From Trichosphaerium sp. ATCC 40318 (lineage: Eukaryota; Protista; Tubulinea), in assembly GCA_038496445.1 (NCBI GenBank), contig JALMLS010000056.1, positions 62,001 through 126,000 of the forward strand: a stretch of DNA of 64,000 bases, in the 5' to 3' direction. Below are positions 5,567 to 52,146 of this stretch, one piece after another; positions within the stretch are counted from its first letter, which is position 1; each line of letters opens with the position of its first letter. The position numbers and the translations under genes were made by a program. The notes under the pieces were generated by a model. That model was given only the letters and a program-made list of their open reading frames with translations, had not been told where the DNA came from and did not search any database.

Positions 5567-6165
5567 TCAAAAATCTAACCAACCTTCTGGAATGACGACT
5601 AATTGACCAAAATCATTCCAAATCTTGAGATCTCCTTTAATTTCACCTTTAACAAAACACAACTGTTGTTTCAATTGACCATAGAAGTTCCACTCTGTGC
5701 TCTCTCCTTCTCTTTCACCATTAACAAAGTGTTCAAGTTTTTCTAATTGTCCATTCCCATGCCATTTCTTACATTCTCCTTCAAGTTTACCATTAACATA
5801 GCGACAGTGTTTTAGTAAAAGCCCATTTTTATCATGCCACTTGTTCTCTCCATGGCGCTGACCATGTCTAAAATACTGCTGAATACGAATGATGTATTCT
5901 CCACAAACAGCTTTGTCCATCCATTTGCCATGTTTATTTAAATCACTATCAAACTTAGTGGTAGTTGCCGAGTGCTTTGCCAACAAGGCCCACTTTGTAT
6001 AAATTTCATCGTCCAACTCCATGATATCAAGCTGAATCTCAATGGGAAGAAGAAATAAGTGGTGAGCTTCAGAAACACTGGGCTGGTGTTGTGTAAGCGA
6101 AAAGTGCACAGTGCGAACTTGCAGGAACTACAGCATAGTACCTTAGACAGTTGTTTTTTTGCCAT
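5567..6165 (-). CDS. F-box-like + MORN-variant (MORN2/YwqK-type) repeat protein
   Basis: One intron (6083-6141) joins MAKKQLSK to PSVSEAHHLFLLPIEIQLDIM (F-box-like), followed by repeats such as GECKKWHGNGQL and GESTEWNFYGQL. Confidence 0.75.
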
Positions 6166-7125: not shown

Positions 7126-8517
7126 ATGTTCAGACCTTTCGCCCGTAGTACACAAATATACCAGGTTACGCGCTCTGATGCTTCCATACACGCACGGAAG
7201 TGGCGTTTCGAGGTGAAGGGGAAAAAAAGCGTTAAGGGTATACCACGTGCCGTGGCCAGCGTGGTAGTACGCGACCGCCCAGGTAGGCTTGTTATAAATA
7301 ATAGGATGAATTAAAGATCTGTAGCGTTTTTTTCGACCACGTGCTTCGCCCGCGCACCCCACGCACTTGTTAGAACAGCTTGGCCAGATGGGACACCCAA
7401 GTCACAACTATACACGCTGGATGGAGTAAACGATGGAGATTGCAAGCACTACCACGAGAATGGTAATCTGCGTTCTACTTTAACGTACAAGAATGGAGCA
7501 AAGGTTGGAGAATATGTACACTATTTTCCTGATGAAAAAAAGGAGGTAGTTTGTAACTACGCCAACGGTACGAGGAACTTTTATACCCAAAGAAAGAGAA
7601 GATACAAATGTTCGTTTAGGACGGAAAGCAGGAGAGTATACGCAATATCACCCAAACGGACAGATGTCTGTGTATTGTGTATATGTAAACGGGAGAATAG
7701 AAGGCCTGCATAAGCAATGGTACTAGCCCTTGTAGAAATGTTTGCATAATCTGAGCTTGTTTTAGGAACTCTGGCGGCATGATATTGGCACTTACCTTGT
7801 TTAAGCACGGTTTAAAGGAAGGAGAATCCACTGAATATCATAACAATGGGCAACTCAAGCAACAGACATTCTACAAGAACGATCTGAAGGAGGGTGAATC
7901 AAAGAAATGGTGCAACAGTAGTTTCGCTAATTTTGGTTCTCGCTTTATTTTTTATTGTCACCACATGTTTATCACGTGATTTTTCTAAATTAAGACGTTC
8001 TTTCATTAGGTATCCCAATGGACAGCTCAAAAGTATTCATTTCTTTAGAGAAGGTAAAGAAGAAGGAGAAGAAAAGTCATGGCATTCTAATGGTCAATTG
8101 CGTCATCAAGGACAAAATAAAGATGGAAGAGATGAAGGAGAGTTTAAAAGTTGGTTTTCAAATGGTTCTTTACGTGTTGTAAGGAACTTCAAGGATGGTA
8201 AAGAGCATGGCGACGAGATTGAGTACTACAAAAATGGACAAATTAAAAAGAAAAATACAAACAATCTCGGTAAGGAAGTAGGAGAAACACTTGAATATTA
8301 TGACGATGGAGTATTGAAGAGCAAAATAAACCTTGTAGACGGTTTAAGAGAAGGTCAATTTGAGACTTTTCATCCTAATGGTAAGATTAAATCTAAAGGT
8401 GTCTACTTGGATGGTAGATTAGATGGAGATTACAGAACATGGGACGATAAGGGTATCACAACTTTATCTCGCATTTACCGAAGAGGAGAAATTCGCGAAA
8501 CAAAGAAACAACTCTAG
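7126..8517 (+). CDS. Long MORN-variant (MORN2) repeat protein with possible mitochondrial presequence
   Basis: 4 introns; more than a dozen G-x3-(Y/W)-x2-NG-x-L repeats; Arg-rich N-terminus MFRPFARSTQ. Confidence 0.8.
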
Positions 8518-8925: not shown

Positions 8926-10020
8926 TCAGACACGTCGTTGATATGGTTGGTGTCGTCGATTTCGTTTTGTGGTCTTGCGTTTTGCTTTACGGCATATTAA
9001 AGGTGATGACGCTTTAGATTGCCATTGCTCAATTAGAGCAGCTACAAGAACTTTGTAGATGAAGATGAACTGTCCGACTGTTTGAACCATCGCCCAACTT
9101 CTTTGTTCTCTGAGCTTCTTTATGATATCTGGAACGTTTACGACGCGATTGATCGAGTTTACAAAACAAGAAGGAAGTTCCTTTGTAGGTTTAGATAAAT
9201 CGACTGTTTCTTCCTTTGTAGTTGTTTTATCTTCCTCGCTTCTTGTGTACTTCGCTAGCTTGCTTATAGCGATAGCAGAGCTAATAAAAGTGCCAGCTCT
9301 GCCGACACCCGCGGAGCAGTGTGTAATAACGGGTCCGTTTAGCTTATTTAGTTTTGCGGCTTCTCTGTATAGTTTTGTGAGGTTGTAGAGCGAAACGATC
9401 GAATGCGCGTCAGACGGCGTTCCAAAATCAGGCCAACCCATAAATTGTAGTTGTATTACTTGTCGCGTTTCGTCGGTTACGCTGTGAGTTAGTGTGAAGT
9501 TTCGTGTGATTACTTCTTTTGAGACTGATTGGCTAAGTAACGTAATTTGAATGTCTCCCCATACGCACGTCATCCCCAAGCGATTTGGCCAATACATGTC
9601 GCCCTTTTTATAGCCGTTTTCAAAAAGTTTTAAAAGTGTCACTATAACGCCTGAACGCTGTTCCCATACCATTTGCCAAAAGTCATTAAATGTTGAAGGT
9701 AAAGGGCACTGTGTTGCGATCCATTCGTGCTCGTTCGTTTCTTTTTCTGCGTCGCCGCAGTAACTAGCGTTTATGTAATTGTTTGTTCTTGTTCGCCACG
9801 TTTGATTTAATTTCACTCTACTTCCTTCGTTTGGTAATATATTAGAATAGCGGTTCTTGTTATGGTTCGCTGGAGCTGAAGCAGTTGGATACGTTTGTTT
9901 TATAGCTGTATAACTTGTTGGTTTATCCTTTGTTTCTTCTAGATCGTTGTATTGACTTTCTAGCTCTTCTATGTTCAAGTGCTGCGTGAATTGGAGCATT
10001 TTGTTTTTATGTAATTTCAT
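8926..10020 (-). CDS. Classical (tyrosine-specific) protein tyrosine phosphatase, intronless
   Basis: KNRYSNI, YINAS, IATQCP, DFWQMVWEQ, WPDFG, HCSAGVGRAG and MVQT motifs all intact. Confidence 0.95.
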   Translation of the reverse strand: MKLHKNKMLQFTQHLNIEELESQYNDLEETKDKPTSYTAIKQTYPTASAPANHNKNRYSNILPNEGSRVKLNQTWRTRTNNYINASYCGDAEKETNEHEWIATQCPLPSTFNDFWQMVWEQRSGVIVTLLKLFENGYKKGDMYWPNRLGMTCVWGDIQITLLSQSVSKEVITRNFTLTHSVTDETRQVIQLQFMGWPDFGTPSDAHSIVSLYNLTKLYREAAKLNKLNGPVITHCSAGVGRAGTFISSAIAISKLAKYTRSEEDKTTTKEETVDLSKPTKELPSCFVNSINRVVNVPDIIKKLREQRSWAMVQTVGQFIFIYKVLVAALIEQWQSKASSPLICRKAKRKTTKRNRRHQPYQRRV

Positions 10021-15422: not shown

Positions 15423-16801
15423 CTAAACATGCTCTGACCAAGGAAAGGATTTATCACTATTGTCCGTGTGTGCCCAATAATATCCACTCAATTCTCCAGT
15501 ATCTTTGTAATAACCTTTGTATAATAGGAGCCCTTCTGAGTTCCAAAACTCATCTGACTTTTCGCCAGTAAGTTGTCTTAAAAACTTGATCTGACCATTT
15601 TTATACCACTTCTTTTGAAAGTCCTCTGTATAATGCTTTGCGATTTGTCCATCTTCATACCATTCTTTTATAAGGTTAGTATCATATTCGCGTTTAATTT
15701 TCCCATCTTTATACCATTCCTTAAGCATGTGTCCTTTTCTGTAATCTCTTATTTGACCAAGTTCAAAATAATTTTCAATCTCAACAGCATTGCCAAGATT
15801 ATAAATCACCCTTTTCTTGATTTGGCCACTCCCCTCATACATACATCTCCATTCGCCTTCCTTCAAACCTTTGCGCATTTTACCCTCCACACTTAAAGTA
15901 CCACTTGCATACCACTCAGAGTATGGACCATCTTTGATACCATCTTTGTAGAACTGTCGAACCTTTATACCATTATTGCAACTCTTGCGTGCGTTCTCAA
16001 TAGTGAATTCCATTTGGCCGTCAAATTCACCATGTTTGTATGTCATTAGCCGCCAATGTCCGTTTTGGTGGTACTCAGTGTGTGGCCCATGAAGCCTTCC
16101 TTGATTATCATAATATTTTTTTTGAAAATAAAACTGTGGAGTATTGAACCGAGTTCGTCTCCATCCCTTCCAATGTCCAATTTGTTTTAATTCCACTGAA
16201 TAATGTGTCATAATTGCTGCTTTTCTTGAGAGAACATGCCTAAACATAATTAGAAACAGCAACAAAATGCAATCAAGTACCACTTGGAGAAGGTTGTACG
16301 TTCCATCTCGCAGATATACTGTTGTATTTCAGGTGGTAATGACAACAACAAGGAAGTGTCATAGTCTAGAATAGCTGTATATTTATCTTTTAAGATGGCA
16401 GCAGCCTCTCGTCTTAAGTTTGCTAGGTATGACACCCAAGTTTTTCCTTTTGTCTTTAAGCTAGGACGGGATGCGCCAACACCTTTCTTTAGTGGTGCAC
16501 TTATTACTACGCTATCAGAAGGTGCGTCGTGAGGTTGGGGTATAAAAGTGAACTGCTCCTCTTTAAGCTGTTTAGGTTTGAAAGTAAATGATGGTTCAGC
16601 AGCTTGAGTTGGCGCTTGTGGTTTGGCTGAGAATACAAAAAGCGGTTGATCTGCTTCGGCTTTTGCATTTGATAAAGCAATACTGGGTTTGAAAATAAAT
16701 GCGCTACCTTGAGTGGTATAAATACGAAGGAGAATAGAGAAGTAGAAACTTTAAAGAATACCTTTGCTATTACTATCACTGGGCTTTGTAGAAGTTTGCA
16801 T
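15423..16801 (-). CDS. F-box-like + MORN2-repeat protein with N-terminal FxF-motif low-complexity region; paralog of 5567-6165
   Basis: Two introns join MQTSTKPSDSNSKG/SAFIFKP...LLLSLPPEIQQYICEMERTTFSKW/HVLSRK to the MORN2 repeats of ORF 15423-16283. Confidence 0.75.
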
Positions 16802-45800: not shown

Positions 45801-47122
45801 GACAACCTATGAATAAGTTGTTCAATCAAGACCGTAAGATACGACCAAGACTAACAGAAGATATTGTAAGAAGACCAGCAAGTATGCGGTATGTAAACAA
45901 ATGAGAAATAGAAAACAACTAGTTGTTGTCTAATTTTGGTTAGAAAGTCGAAAAAAGACAAAAAAGCAGCTCGAAGGTCTATCAGTCTTAGCCAGATTAC
46001 CCTTCCTGAAGCAATGAAGAATATGCAGGGTACTGGAACTAGTGACACGTTCCACATTGAAAACGTCAAGCGTACTGATCCAGAACCATTAGAAAGTATG
46101 CAATCCTCCTTTATTCTTTCTAGTTAGCTTTCTAACTGTTCTTTAGAACCTAAAAAGCGTCCACCGGCACCACCTGTACTTGCTAGAAACGAAAGAACAC
46201 TTATAGAGTTTCTGGAAGAACTCAAACATGCAGGTACATGTTTAGTACTTCAACAAGGTCAACAAATCGCTAACACTTGTATTTAAAGGCAAAACACCCT
46301 CTAAAATCAATAAGCCAAAACGTTCGCCTACACGTAATAGTGCGAATGTAACAATAAAGAGCCCACCAGGAAGTGTTAAATTTAAGAGCCCAAAGCGACA
46401 CTCTTACAAAGGTTCTTCTACTGTCAACAAAAGGCCAAAAAGAAAAGAATCAACACAGTCTTATAATACACTCTCTTCACCTCCAAAAGTTCCAAAGCCC
46501 CTATCACGTGAAGAAAAGCTATGTACGTATTTTAATCATCTTTTCTATAAAGTGTTTATCCATGTGATAAAAATATCTTTTCACACGTATTTTTAGTAAG
46601 GGCAAAACGTGTATCTCAATCACGATTACGAAATAATAGAGGAATTAGCTTACCGGCTTTGCCTACCCTTTTAAAACGTCCTGAGCAACAAGATAATCAA
46701 CCTAGTGAAATATCTCCTGCTTCTGTAGCCTCTCCACGACATGTAAAGACGTACGTTGGACTCCCTAAGCTCAACTCATTCAGCGATTTTATGCGGTTTT
46801 TTTGCAAGAAAAATTTCTTTGTCGCTCCATTTCTTCGTACTCAAGACACTTGACTTACTTGCTTGTTTTTTTTAGATACGTTAAATGCACAAAAGATTTT
46901 TCAGGTAAAAAATCAGGAGAGGTTGCTATGAAATGTGGTCAACGTGGATTAGTTCTTGAAGAAGAAAAGAACCGTTGGAAGCTAAAGGTTAGTTCTGAAA
47001 TGGGTTGGGTTAATAAGAGTAACTGTGGAGATACATATACAAAGTCTAAGTCTGGAAGAATTTCGTCTCCAGGGTCAAATCGAAGCTCTTCTAAAGAAAA
47101 GAAAAAGAGTAAGCCGAAATGA
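42821..47122 (+). CDS. RhoGEF with DH, PH, WD40-like propeller, Pro/basic linker and C-terminal SH3
   Basis: EIVDTEKNYLRDL, YLITPIQRIPRYILLL (DH); FVIFNDCIAV (PH); GCSNGEVSVWN, GCKDSTITLWD, SGGSDSCIIFW (WD40); KCTKDFSG...GEVAM...WKL...GWV (SH3). Confidence 0.88.
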
Positions 47123-48621: not shown

Positions 48622-50577
48622 TTATTGTACATTATTAAAGTCTTGCTGGCTATGATTATGCCAAACAGCACGCATTTCTAGCTCATACACGGGTAAGGCT
48701 TGTGCGTGTTTATATAAAAAATACTCCATCGAGTCCTGAGTTGTGTTGCTATTATATTCTGGAGTAGGATCCATATTTAACATTTTCTAAGAACATCAGC
48801 GCTCCTGCTTATGAAAAAAAACAAAGAACTTTTTTTGTCTTTGAAAAGCGAATTTTGGTTGAAGAGTGTGTTCTGTTGTATGCTTTGTACTCTCGTACCT
48901 TTTTTACAATGTGTGTTCTTCCTGTTAACACTTTAAACATTACTACCTTGGCCGTATCGCCTACTTTCAAAGGTGTTTTTCTTCCTCTTGTACAACAATA
49001 TTTTAAGCAATAATCAACGTATCGTGATACATAAATACCCTTTGTGTTGTTTCCAAATCGACCTTCGGGAATAATATAGTTAGTACGTATAAAAAAATAT
49101 CACGTGATCATTCGTAAAGTAGGTAAACTCAAAAGGCCCACAACAAACAGCTGCAACGATTTACGACAACTAGGCAAGTGAAACCCAAACCAAACAAAGA
49201 AGACAATGGCTTTTTTCAAACGGAAAAAAACGATTTAAAATAGCTTTTACCTGCTTCCGTTGATGTACTAGGATTAGAACGGTGGCCATAAGGAAGTAGG
49301 CCCTGTCTAATGGGGTTTTGTTAGTACAAGTTGGATACTATGCAGTTAATCTAGTACCTATAGATACCCTCCAAGTTCGAAGGATGTGTTCCATGAAACC
49401 CAACGGATTCTTTTGTTTGATCTTTTAACTTTTGCTTCATAGCCTCAAAAGAGGCACTACACGGTTCGTTTGAGCATTCTACTATAACATAGAGTATGGA
49501 TATTTACTACGTACGCTAGTTTTGGGTTTGAAACACGACGTGCACTCACAAGAAGGAAAGTAATAGGTCTTGGTTGTACAGGAGGGTTATAGATATCAAT
49601 TTGATTATTCGTGTGAGAAATAACTTTACTGTAAAGCTTCCTATACTCTCTAGAATCTGCTGGCACTACACAAAAAAAATTAGACGGAGATTTCTTGTGC
49701 ACGTGATTACCGTGACATAAGAACGAAGCTGTTGCTCGATACTTGGAATCCACTACAGCGTTAAAGTTAGAGAAAGAAAACCGTTATGATAACCAGAAAA
49801 AAAAAAGGTTAAAAAAACGCTTCATTGCGAACCTCGTTTTAGCTCTAGTATGTACGCTGATATTTTCTTTGTTGATCTGCGTGGTATATTTAATATGTTC
49901 ACCATACGAGCTTTGTCTAATTCAAGAAGATCCGCTCCACTAGAACAGAAAAGTAAGTTACGAAAAGCACGTGTGAAGTTTTTTTTAGCTTTGTTTGAAA
50001 ATAAAAAAATAAATGTAGTGTACGTTATATTGTGATCTTCCATGATGTAAGAAAGCTCCGGATCTATCATATGCATTGCATAAATAACTTGATCTACAGT
50101 CCAATCTTCAGGAGACTCCGCAGAAATTGTACCAATCCTCTGAAGCTTGTTTTTGACAATTCTGTACTCGTCAGCGTGTGTAACGAGTTTGTGTTTAGAT
50201 TGAAACCATGTCGCCATACATTCAGGCGTATCAGGTATTGTTAATTTACCTTCGCCTATAGGTGTATCTGATACCCATTCCCCAAGCCACTGCGCGCCAT
50301 CTGCAAATGTCCAAGCACCAACTCCATGTCGTTTATCATCCATAAAAGTGCCAAAATATGAAGTACCATTTGCGCACGTGAGAGTGCCCATACCATTCAT
50401 TTTATCGTCTTGGTACTCTCCACTATATTTCTTGCCATCAGGCCATATACATTCTCCTTTACCATGTCTTTTATAGCCTAGGCACTCACCAATGTATTTA
50501 ACACCATCAGGTGTAGTATACTCCACGTGTTTCTTTTTTTTACGACTTTTAGAGCCTACACCATTCTTATTACCCAT
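48622..50577 (-). CDS. MORN-repeat + SAM + PARP-family ADP-ribosyltransferase catalytic domain protein
   Basis: Manual splicing through 7 GT-AG introns keeps frame: MGNK..., MORN repeats, SAM (EDWTVDQV...SGADLLEL), DSREY...RRVSNPKL/AASFE...VGFHGT...G/RFGNNTKGIYVSRYVDYCLKY...VMFKVLTGR...MEYFLYKHAQALPVYELE, stop 48622-48624. Confidence 0.85.
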
Positions 50578-50768: not shown

Positions 50769-51653
50769 ATGGCGTACGAAAAAGATTCCAAGGAAGAAGA
50801 CGAGGAGCTGAAGGCTATATTTAAGAATACAAAGTCATCAGAAGCAGTTGGTTCTTGGAGGTTTTTAAAATGGGTTATTCCACATGCTCTTTGGAGTATG
50901 ACGTATAGGAGGTTTTATCACGAGTACCACTAATCCATATTTGAGCATGAGTACAAGATTGTTTATGTGTTCATTGTAGCTACGTTTATTGCGTTGGGAA
51001 ACAAGCGCCAGAAGCTAAAGTGACAACAATAGAATCTAAAGGAGAAACAGTTTATGACCTTTTATCTTTTTCTAAAGGCACGTGATTTTTTATTAACCTT
51101 CGAAACCTGTTAAGTTTTAAGTCCAGATAAACCATTAGTACTATCTTTTGGGAACTATACATGACCTCCGTGGGCAGCAACCTGCTCAAGGCTGCAAAAA
51201 ATAAAAGAAAATTGGCAAGATAAAGCTGATTTTTTAGTTGTTTATATTCTTGGTCAGTTGCATTGCAATGAATCCTTTTTCTTTGCTTCGCTAATATACT
51301 ACTACTTCCAGAGACTCACCCAAGTGATAATAAAAATGGTTGGATGATAAGTGGTAATGATGTATGCTTTCGTCAACCTACAACTATAGAGGAACGTTTA
51401 CAAATTGCACAGCAATTTTTAGACGACAACCCAACTTTTACCATCCCATTCGCAATTGATTTGATGGATAATAATGCCGCATCAAGTTTTGAAGCCTCAC
51501 CAGAACGGTACATTTCGTAGAGTTGACTGATTGATCTTACAAGTCGATAGTTTGTATATTTTGCAGAATGGTATCATCGCTTATAAAGGTGGTGAAGGTC
51601 CAGATGAATACAGACTTTCAGAGGTTGTAACTTGGCTCAAAAATAATACCTAA
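50769..51653 (+). CDS. Iodothyronine deiodinase-like selenoprotein (in-frame UGA = Sec at 51162-51164)
   Basis: Spliced: VGKQAPEAKV...KPLVLSFGNYT-U-PPW...DFLVVYILETHPSD...GW...RQPTTIEER...IDLMDNNA...ASPERLYILQNG...YKGGEGP...EVVTWL; homology continues on both sides of the TGA; SECIS downstream. Confidence 0.93.
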
Positions 51654-51658
51654 TAATG

Positions 51659-51744
51659 TTCATGTGTTGTACTGATGTGAAAGTGTAGTGACAAAAGCCT
51701 CACGTGGCAGTTTTGCACATGATAATAAAGTATAACGTAATGAA
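51659..51744 (+). promoter_or_regulatory. Type II SECIS element in the 3' UTR
   Basis: Helix I (TTCAT/ATGAA and TGTGTTGTACT/AGTATAACGTA), core GTGAA (51677)...TGAT (51720), helix II GTGTAGTGAC/GTTTTGCAC, unpaired AAAA, apical mini-stem GCC/GGC. Confidence 0.9.
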
Positions 51745-52146
51745 AATACCACACTGTTTATAAAGACCGCAACGTCGCTGTGACTATGTCAACGTAGTAG
51801 ATGAGGAGGAAGTTGAGCGAGAGCAAACTGGCAGACATGGCGAACGTTAAGTAATCAAACAAAACACAGAGATAAATCAAGTCGGATTGTTAAAACTGAT
51901 CATCGCACCAACTTTTATTTTTTTTTTTATACATTACAAGTTGATTCTCAAACAAAACAACATTCTGCGATGATTTTTTGAATGTTGCCAGCGCATGTGG
52001 GACACAGAGAATCACAATTGGATTTCGAAGTTCCATAACAAGGGGTTTAAAAAAAAATGTCCCTTCGAATCGCGTTCAGCCCAAAAAATTAGGCGAAGAG
52101 GTGAGGAGTGAAATTAAACTGATTGTAGACGATTTAATGTCTTGAT

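Follow-up and report, generated by a model that had tools for sequence, protein, structure and literature searches.

Deiodinase-like selenoproteins have been described in several lineages besides the vertebrates. Lobanov et al. reported one from the amoeba Dictyostelium discoideum in 2007, together with its type II SECIS (PMC2375036), and in marine bacteria of the Sargasso Sea both selenocysteine (Sec) and cysteine forms of deiodinase-like proteins exist, for which a redox role has been suggested (PMC1088965). The SECIS element itself has the core consensus UGAN/KGAW, in which the preceding base is not fixed (PMC3753652). GUGA_AA is the form of most SECIS elements in Chlamydomonas and Ostreococcus and of 12 of 21 in a sponge (PMC3473315). 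The present study concerns a locus in a 64-kb stretch of DNA, referred to here as the window (G000:C35:62001-126000, with all positions counted from its first letter), which belongs to an assembly of 70.3 Mb in 642 contigs and is eukaryotic in character, with 37.8% G+C and short spliced introns. Our data indicate that this locus is a deiodinase-family (PF00837) selenoprotein gene in which UGA codon 97 is read as Sec and a type II SECIS lies in the 3'UTR, and we put the probability of this reading at a little above 0.9. It adds one member to a known kind of gene, of which many are present in the genome.

The five-exon nuclear gene at 50769-51653 of the plus strand encodes a thyroid-hormone-deiodinase family enzyme of 225 residues; the gene structure is observed except at intron 3, which is predicted. 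The coding sequence is 678 nt long, Sec is residue 97, and introns 1 to 4 measure 56, 49, 59 and 43 nt. A word search of proteins found two ORFs of MMETSP Transcript_30093, g.33615 and g.33616, whose sequences fit the exons without a mismatch, with the break between them at the TGA. The first of these (P0002 = g.33615, 96 aa) runs from the ATG to ...SFGNYT and ends exactly at the TGA; the second (P0001 = g.33616, 88 aa) opens at the next Met downstream (MISGND...) and reaches ...WLKNNT at the TAA. As both ORFs lie on one transcript, the gene is expressed, the TGA is present in the mRNA and is not an error of genome sequencing, and the ORF caller has split one gene in two, as an earlier note on this DNA had expected of gene callers.

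Exon 1 (50769-50923) starts at the ATG at 50769, which has an in-frame stop 11 codons upstream, and holds 51 codons and 2 bases that are identical to residues 1-51 of P0002. Intron 1 (50924-50979, GT-AG) gives the junction ...FYH-D-YVY... present in P0002, and exon 2 (50980-51077) corresponds to its residues 53-84. Intron 2 (51078-51126) is GC-AG and thus has a non-canonical donor, yet it is the sole junction that yields ...SFSK-D-KPLV... of P0002; the homologous donor in the paralogs on contigs C3, C1 and C54 is GT. An alternative model with GT-AG introns throughout (donor 50912, intron 51082-51121) stays in frame and is wrong at two junctions according to P0002 and P0001; it was replaced by the donor at 50924 and the GC-AG intron that the transcript ORFs support. 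Exon 3 (51127-51252) carries the active site, with P0002 residues 86-96 before the TGA. Intron 3 (51253-51311, GT-AG) lies outside the coverage of the transcript ORFs, so that continuity of the frame across it is a prediction, based on the split codon GAG, which supplies the Glu of the motif E-x-H-P-S-D, on the collinear Pfam pieces and on the exon plan of the paralogs. Exon 4 (51312-51507) contains residues 1-54 of P0001, intron 4 (51508-51550, GT-AG) gives the junction ...SPE-R-LYIL... present in P0001, and exon 5 (51551-51653) contains residues 56-88 and ends in the TAA at 51651-51653.

On the other side of the ATG, a divergent neighbour on the minus strand (49825-50577) starts about 190 nt upstream, and its first long exon has MORN repeats (PF02493, E 1.5e-16). 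Elsewhere in the window there are three open frames with MORN_2 repeats, at 5570-6109 (minus), 7894-8514 (plus) and 15426-16283 (minus), and a 364-residue open frame at 8929-10020 (minus) with a classical protein-tyrosine phosphatase domain (PF00102, E 1.3e-63).

For the homology searches the spliced model was used exon by exon together with the two transcript ORFs. The matches to PF00837 (T4_deiodinase) are collinear, covering profile positions 58-113, 115-142, 146-203 and 205-236, which bears out the family that the earlier note had proposed from the letters. P0001 scored 71.6 bits, exon 4 (profile 146-203) 30.9 bits and exon 5 (profile 205-236) 33 bits, against a cut-off of 27 bits. Residues 38-96 of P0002 align to profile 58-113, and the part of exon 3 after the TGA aligns to 115-142. 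Since the N-terminal half ends at 113 and the next piece starts at 115, the TGA at 51162-51164 is column 114, the Sec column of the family, in the setting PLVLSFGNYT-TGA-PPW where it had been placed earlier. The active-site motif F-G-x-x-T-U-P-P-[FW] is present as SFGNYT-U-PPW. In a search of the PDB exon 5 matched mouse Dio3 (4TR3) with an E-value of 3.3e-7 and Dio2 (9H48) was also matched. Exon 4 alone gave no deiodinase match in the PDB, and it took a profile of the exon 4 pieces of the paralogs to align this part to both Dio3 (4TR3) and Dio2 (9H48). P0002 found nothing useful in the PDB.

Besides this gene the genome holds at least 11 further PF00837 loci in addition to decayed copies, and most of the loci have one TGA across the same profile region. 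At least nine paralogs keep the TGA in the Sec column (on contigs C3, C1, C54, C16, C21, C44, C26 and C4). Four paralogs were counted as sharing both the five-exon layout and the motif SFG[NS]YT-TGA-PPW; the copies on C3, C1 and C54 (69k) have both, and the C54 226k copy is represented by exons 4-5 and the SECIS alone. More distant paralogs read GSYT-TGA-PPF/L and GSHT-TGA-PPM. The SFG[NS]YT-U-PPW subfamily has thus spread by duplication in this genome, with members on C35 (the present locus), C3, C1 and C54 and with decayed copies. On C54 there are four SECIS copies (69.9k, 92.8k, 164.7k and 226.3k). At 92.8k and 164.7k the exons are reduced to fragments of exons 4 and 5, and at 226k exons 1-3 are not recognisable. 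A near-identical SECIS of 89.1 bits lies at C7:261313-261399, with no deiodinase exons within 1.5 kb.

Comparison with the nearest paralog, that on C3, gave a pN of 0.286 and a pS of 0.76 after the TGA, and a pN of 0.287 and a pS of 0.70 before it. Equally low pN on both sides of the TGA with saturated synonymous sites shows that purifying selection continues past the codon. This bears directly on the possibility that the UGA is a true stop, in which case a 96-residue N-terminal fragment would be the only product and the downstream exons would be an untranslated remainder. The ORF caller did handle the UGA in this way, and the Rfam models, as described below, do not recognise the SECIS. Against this, nonsynonymous divergence does not rise beyond the codon, the best Pfam and PDB matches sit in the downstream exons, the fragment would be without half of the thioredoxin fold, and a conserved, covarying SECIS exists together with the Sec machinery in the genome. 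A true stop is therefore very unlikely, and reading of the codon as Sec is retained.

A further possibility is ongoing decay: the locus, though transcribed, would be an incipient pseudogene in a family that has over-expanded. Decayed relatives do exist (C54:92.8k, C54:164.7k, C54:226k without exons 1-3, and the orphan SECIS on C7), and in the present copy intron 2 has a GC donor, NKN is inserted into HPSD-GW, a relay Ser is replaced by Asn and the SECIS scores lower than any other in the subfamily. However, all five exons are open, the transcript uses the splice junctions, and the SECIS core, its AAAA and its helices are intact; in addition, a pN of 0.29 with saturated synonymous sites relative to the nearest paralog reflects long-term constraint. 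Decay is thus improbable.

The type II SECIS occupies 51659-51744 of the plus strand and was characterised by its fold, by an alignment of the paralogs with a consensus fold, by a covariance model and by counts of covariation. The stem-loop starts at the 6th base after the TAA, and both this spacing and the GUGA core are as originally reported, as are the outer limits of the whole locus, 50769 and 51744. The 5' arm of helix I (51664-51673) is followed by an internal loop and by the core GUGA at 51677-51680 (5' G-UGA-A, 51677-51681). On the 3' side of the GUGA there is helix II of about 10 pairs, then an unpaired AAAA at 51693-51696, 12 nt after the UGA, and a mini-stem GCC/GGC at 51697-51709, in which all 4 modelled pairs change on both sides across the copies. 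The 3' GA lies at 51721-51722 (U-GA-U, 51720-51723). The core fits UGAN ... KGAW with tandem G.A pairs, and the distance of the A's falls in the range of 9-13 nt after the core. Within the 3' internal loop and helix I the sequence reads AAUAAA (51724-51729), a possible poly(A) signal that occurs at the matching place in the SECIS elements of the paralogs. If it is a poly(A) signal, the mRNA would end only a few bases past the SECIS.

The fold shows no extra stability over shuffled sequences (z -0.71), and the curated Rfam SECIS models gave no match at E<=10 on 51400-52000, which we attribute to the largely animal sequences behind those models. As the fold is not unusually stable and Rfam is silent, the case for the SECIS rests on comparison. 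The same element stands in the 3'UTR of the C3 and C1 copies and of two copies on C54, and its 3' side reads CACAUGA without change in five paralogs. The consensus fold of five elements has 24 pairs, 10 of which change on both sides. With seven elements, and on an alignment that was fitted to the model and includes several copies that are close kin, 82% of the cells are paired as compared to 35-54% in slid controls, compensatory changes occur at 14 of the 24 pairs, and the observed value was never attained in 500 shuffles. A pattern-based SECIS scan was only suggestive, because scores of 14 occur on antisense strands too.

A covariance model built from five SECIS elements of the subfamily matched the present element once in the 64-kb window, with 63.1 bits. 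The other match in the window (46506-46584, 16.6 bits) is without a UGA core and was set aside as noise. Genome-wide, the model recovered all copies of the subfamily, this copy having the lowest score (63 bits, against 78-90 for the rest). At lower score it also recovered AUGA elements on the correct strand 3' of divergent deiodinase-like genes on C4 and C44. Two further SECIS-like matches were observed on minus strands, one at G000:C48:165443-165522 (27.4 bits, with a GUGA core) and one at G000:C132:148489-148567 (26.1 bits); simple ORF lists identified no selenoprotein frame upstream of either. The core is GUGA in the C35, C1, C54 and C48 copies and AUGA in the C3, C4 and C44 copies. The GUGA is a habit of the lineage and no aberration. 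The earlier note was right that the core is GUGA and went too far in calling it non-canonical, since GUGA_AA is typical of the SECIS elements in the green algae and the sponge cited above.

The presence of Sec machinery in the organism, which had been presumed, is borne out by the genome. Infernal found a tRNA-Sec with a UCA anticodon at G000:C5:742868-742954 (minus strand), scoring 61.7 bits against a cut-off of 47 bits; its acceptor stem measures 9 bp, its variable arm is long and its anticodon loop reads CUUCAAA. The gene is directly followed by CCA and nine T's, and there are two non-standard pairs in the acceptor stem. ARAGORN called no tRNA in the window and did not call the tRNA-Sec locus on C5. 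Exons of SepSecS lie on C99 (best 79.5 bits), and domain IV of eEFSec lies on C36 (79 bits) and was matched in none of 14 control genomes. Exon pieces resembling selD (SPS2) on C102 score 25-37 bits, which is weak and below the whole-protein cut-off, and a search for the SelD active-site motif at this locus found nothing. One locus of the KTI12 family on C9 could be KTI12 or PSTK, the two not being distinguishable there. Sec insertion would then proceed by the standard eukaryotic route: the SECIS, about 410 nt downstream of the UGA in the mRNA, would recruit a SECIS-binding protein and eEFSec carrying Sec-tRNA(UCA), and UGA codon 97 would be decoded as Sec.

In some protists UGA is reassigned to a standard amino acid. 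If UGA were read as Trp or Cys throughout this genome, there would be no selenoprotein at the locus. However, UGA also serves as an ordinary stop, because the paralogs on C3, C1 and C54 terminate in TGA exactly where the family ends, and three paralogs ending in this way exclude a general reassignment. Furthermore, in-frame TGA is found solely on the Sec column, and tRNA-Sec (UCA), SepSecS and eEFSec are present, so that the probability of reassignment is negligible and decoding as Sec stands. Missing machinery, a TGA that is spliced out or misread, and orthologs ending at this codon had been named in the earlier note as grounds for abandoning the selenoprotein; instead, the genome encodes Sec machinery, the transcript and no fewer than nine paralogs contain the TGA, and the sequence that follows it is under purifying selection.

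The residues around the active site were compared with Dio3, in a numbering anchored on His202 and Trp207 and with roles of the residues taken from PMC11592359. Of the proton relay, Thr169, Tyr197 and Glu200 are kept, and so are the catalytic Sec170 (the UGA), His202, which serves both in the relay and in substrate contact, Trp207, which stacks on His202, and Glu259. Ser167, another relay residue, is Asn here and Ser in the C1 and C54 copies, and the relay residue His219 is Pro. Asp211, which forms a halogen bond to the substrate, is Gly. Arg275, the clamp on the substrate carboxylate (Lys in Dio2), is Glu, and this position reads G-E-G-P in all members of the subfamily. Both recycling cysteines are replaced, the proximal Cys168 by Tyr and the distal Cys239 by Ile. 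A Cys in the motif D-[VI]-C-[FY], four residues before the position of His219, is conserved in the subfamily and is the one residue within the protein that might act as a resolving thiol. The deiodinase insertion motif E-x-H-P-S-D-G-W is present as ETHPSD-NKN-GW, aligned to HPSDGW of Dio3. The three-residue NKN insert between HPSD and GW occurs in this copy alone, the motif being otherwise invariant, and together with the Asn in place of the relay Ser it could alter the activity of this copy. An N-terminal transmembrane anchor is absent by hydropathy, the best 19-residue Kyte-Doolittle mean being 0.57, in exon 1; there is only an amphipathic Trp-rich segment. The enzyme is apparently soluble, with a thioredoxin fold.

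The positions by which Dio3 grips the thyronine carry other residues here, which makes a thyroid hormone an improbable substrate. A different substrate had been argued for from the lack of a Cys two residues before Sec. The Cys is indeed absent, and alone it says little about the substrate, for vertebrate Dio2 also lacks it and has Ala in its place (PMC11592359). The idea of a different substrate remains plausible on other grounds, namely the replacements Arg275→Glu, His219→Pro, Asp211→Gly and Cys239→Ile and the lack of an anchor. The kept core of Thr-Sec, Tyr, Glu and His-Pro-Ser-Asp...Gly-Trp makes it most likely that a selenolate would attack a small substrate at a halogen (or at a peroxide oxygen). 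External thiols would then reduce the Se-X or Se-OH intermediate so formed; neither recycling cysteine of Dio1/3 is present.

Whether such an enzyme acts on halogens or on peroxides is a matter of function and leaves its identity as a selenoprotein untouched. It is possible, though on balance doubtful, that it is a peroxiredoxin-like thiol/selenol peroxidase or oxidoreductase and no dehalogenase. Deiodinases share a peroxiredoxin-like fold and mechanism, the residues in contact with thyronine are changed here, and a redox role has been suggested for bacterial deiodinase-like proteins, which occur where thyroid hormones are absent (PMC1088965, PMC11592359). On the other hand, the deiodinase-specific insertion E-x-H-P-S-D...G-W is retained and peroxiredoxins are without this motif, and the known positions of resolving cysteines hold no Cys. 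As a more speculative proposal, drawn from the residue pattern, the SFG[NS]YT-U-PPW subfamily might constitute a distinct, duplicated clade of soluble deiodinase-fold selenoenzymes with no recycling cysteines and with the charge at Arg275 reversed by a change to Glu, serving as reductive dehalogenases of non-thyronine organohalogens. Its substrates may be iodotyrosines or bromophenols from prey or seawater, with no part in the processing of hormones.

The recoding mechanism and the GUGA core are both known already, and the interest of the locus, which is modest, lies in the expansion of the family and in the pattern of residues. Public transcript data hold the gene as two unrelated short ORFs, an annotation that is corrected here. 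The gene is one more verified member of a deiodinase-like family that has expanded markedly in this protist, an organism rich in selenoproteins and, judging by the MMETSP source, marine. A kept catalytic core with lost thyronine contacts, lost recycling cysteines and no anchor gives a testable reason to expect a substrate other than a thyroid hormone, and this bears on the old question of what role deiodinases had before thyroid signalling.

Set beside the known systems, the locus is in part familiar and in part different. By its description (PMC2375036) the Dictyostelium discoideum gene is likewise a PF00837 gene of an amoeba protist in which thyroid hormones are not known; its product has an active-site Sec, and its type II SECIS contains unpaired A's. 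In Dictyostelium, however, it is a single gene in a selenoproteome of five members, whereas at least 11 loci and decayed copies are found here, and in its SECIS the core is preceded by UGUA and the mini-stem is very long, in contrast to the GUGA or AUGA core and the mini-stem of 3-4 bp in this genome. With the vertebrate Dio1-3 the protein shares the thioredoxin-type catalytic domain, Thr-Sec-Pro-Pro, the residues Tyr197, Glu200, His202, Trp207 and Glu259 and the C-terminal G-x-G-P...W-L motif, and the proximal Cys is absent as in Dio2. It differs from them in having no hydrophobic anchor where they have a single N-terminal transmembrane one, Trp in place of Phe three residues after Sec, and three additional residues between HPSD and GW. 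The bacterial deiodinase-like proteins belong to the same Pfam family, exist in Sec and Cys forms and have a presumed non-thyroid role in redox or dehalogenation (PMC1088965); their SECIS lies inside the coding region just after the UGA, whereas this gene has introns and a eukaryotic SECIS in the 3'UTR. Finally, the GUGA_AA elements of Chlamydomonas, Ostreococcus and Amphimedon (PMC3473315) share with the present one the G before the UGA/GA quartet, the A's of the apical bulge and the type II architecture, but this genome mixes GUGA and AUGA cores within one gene family.
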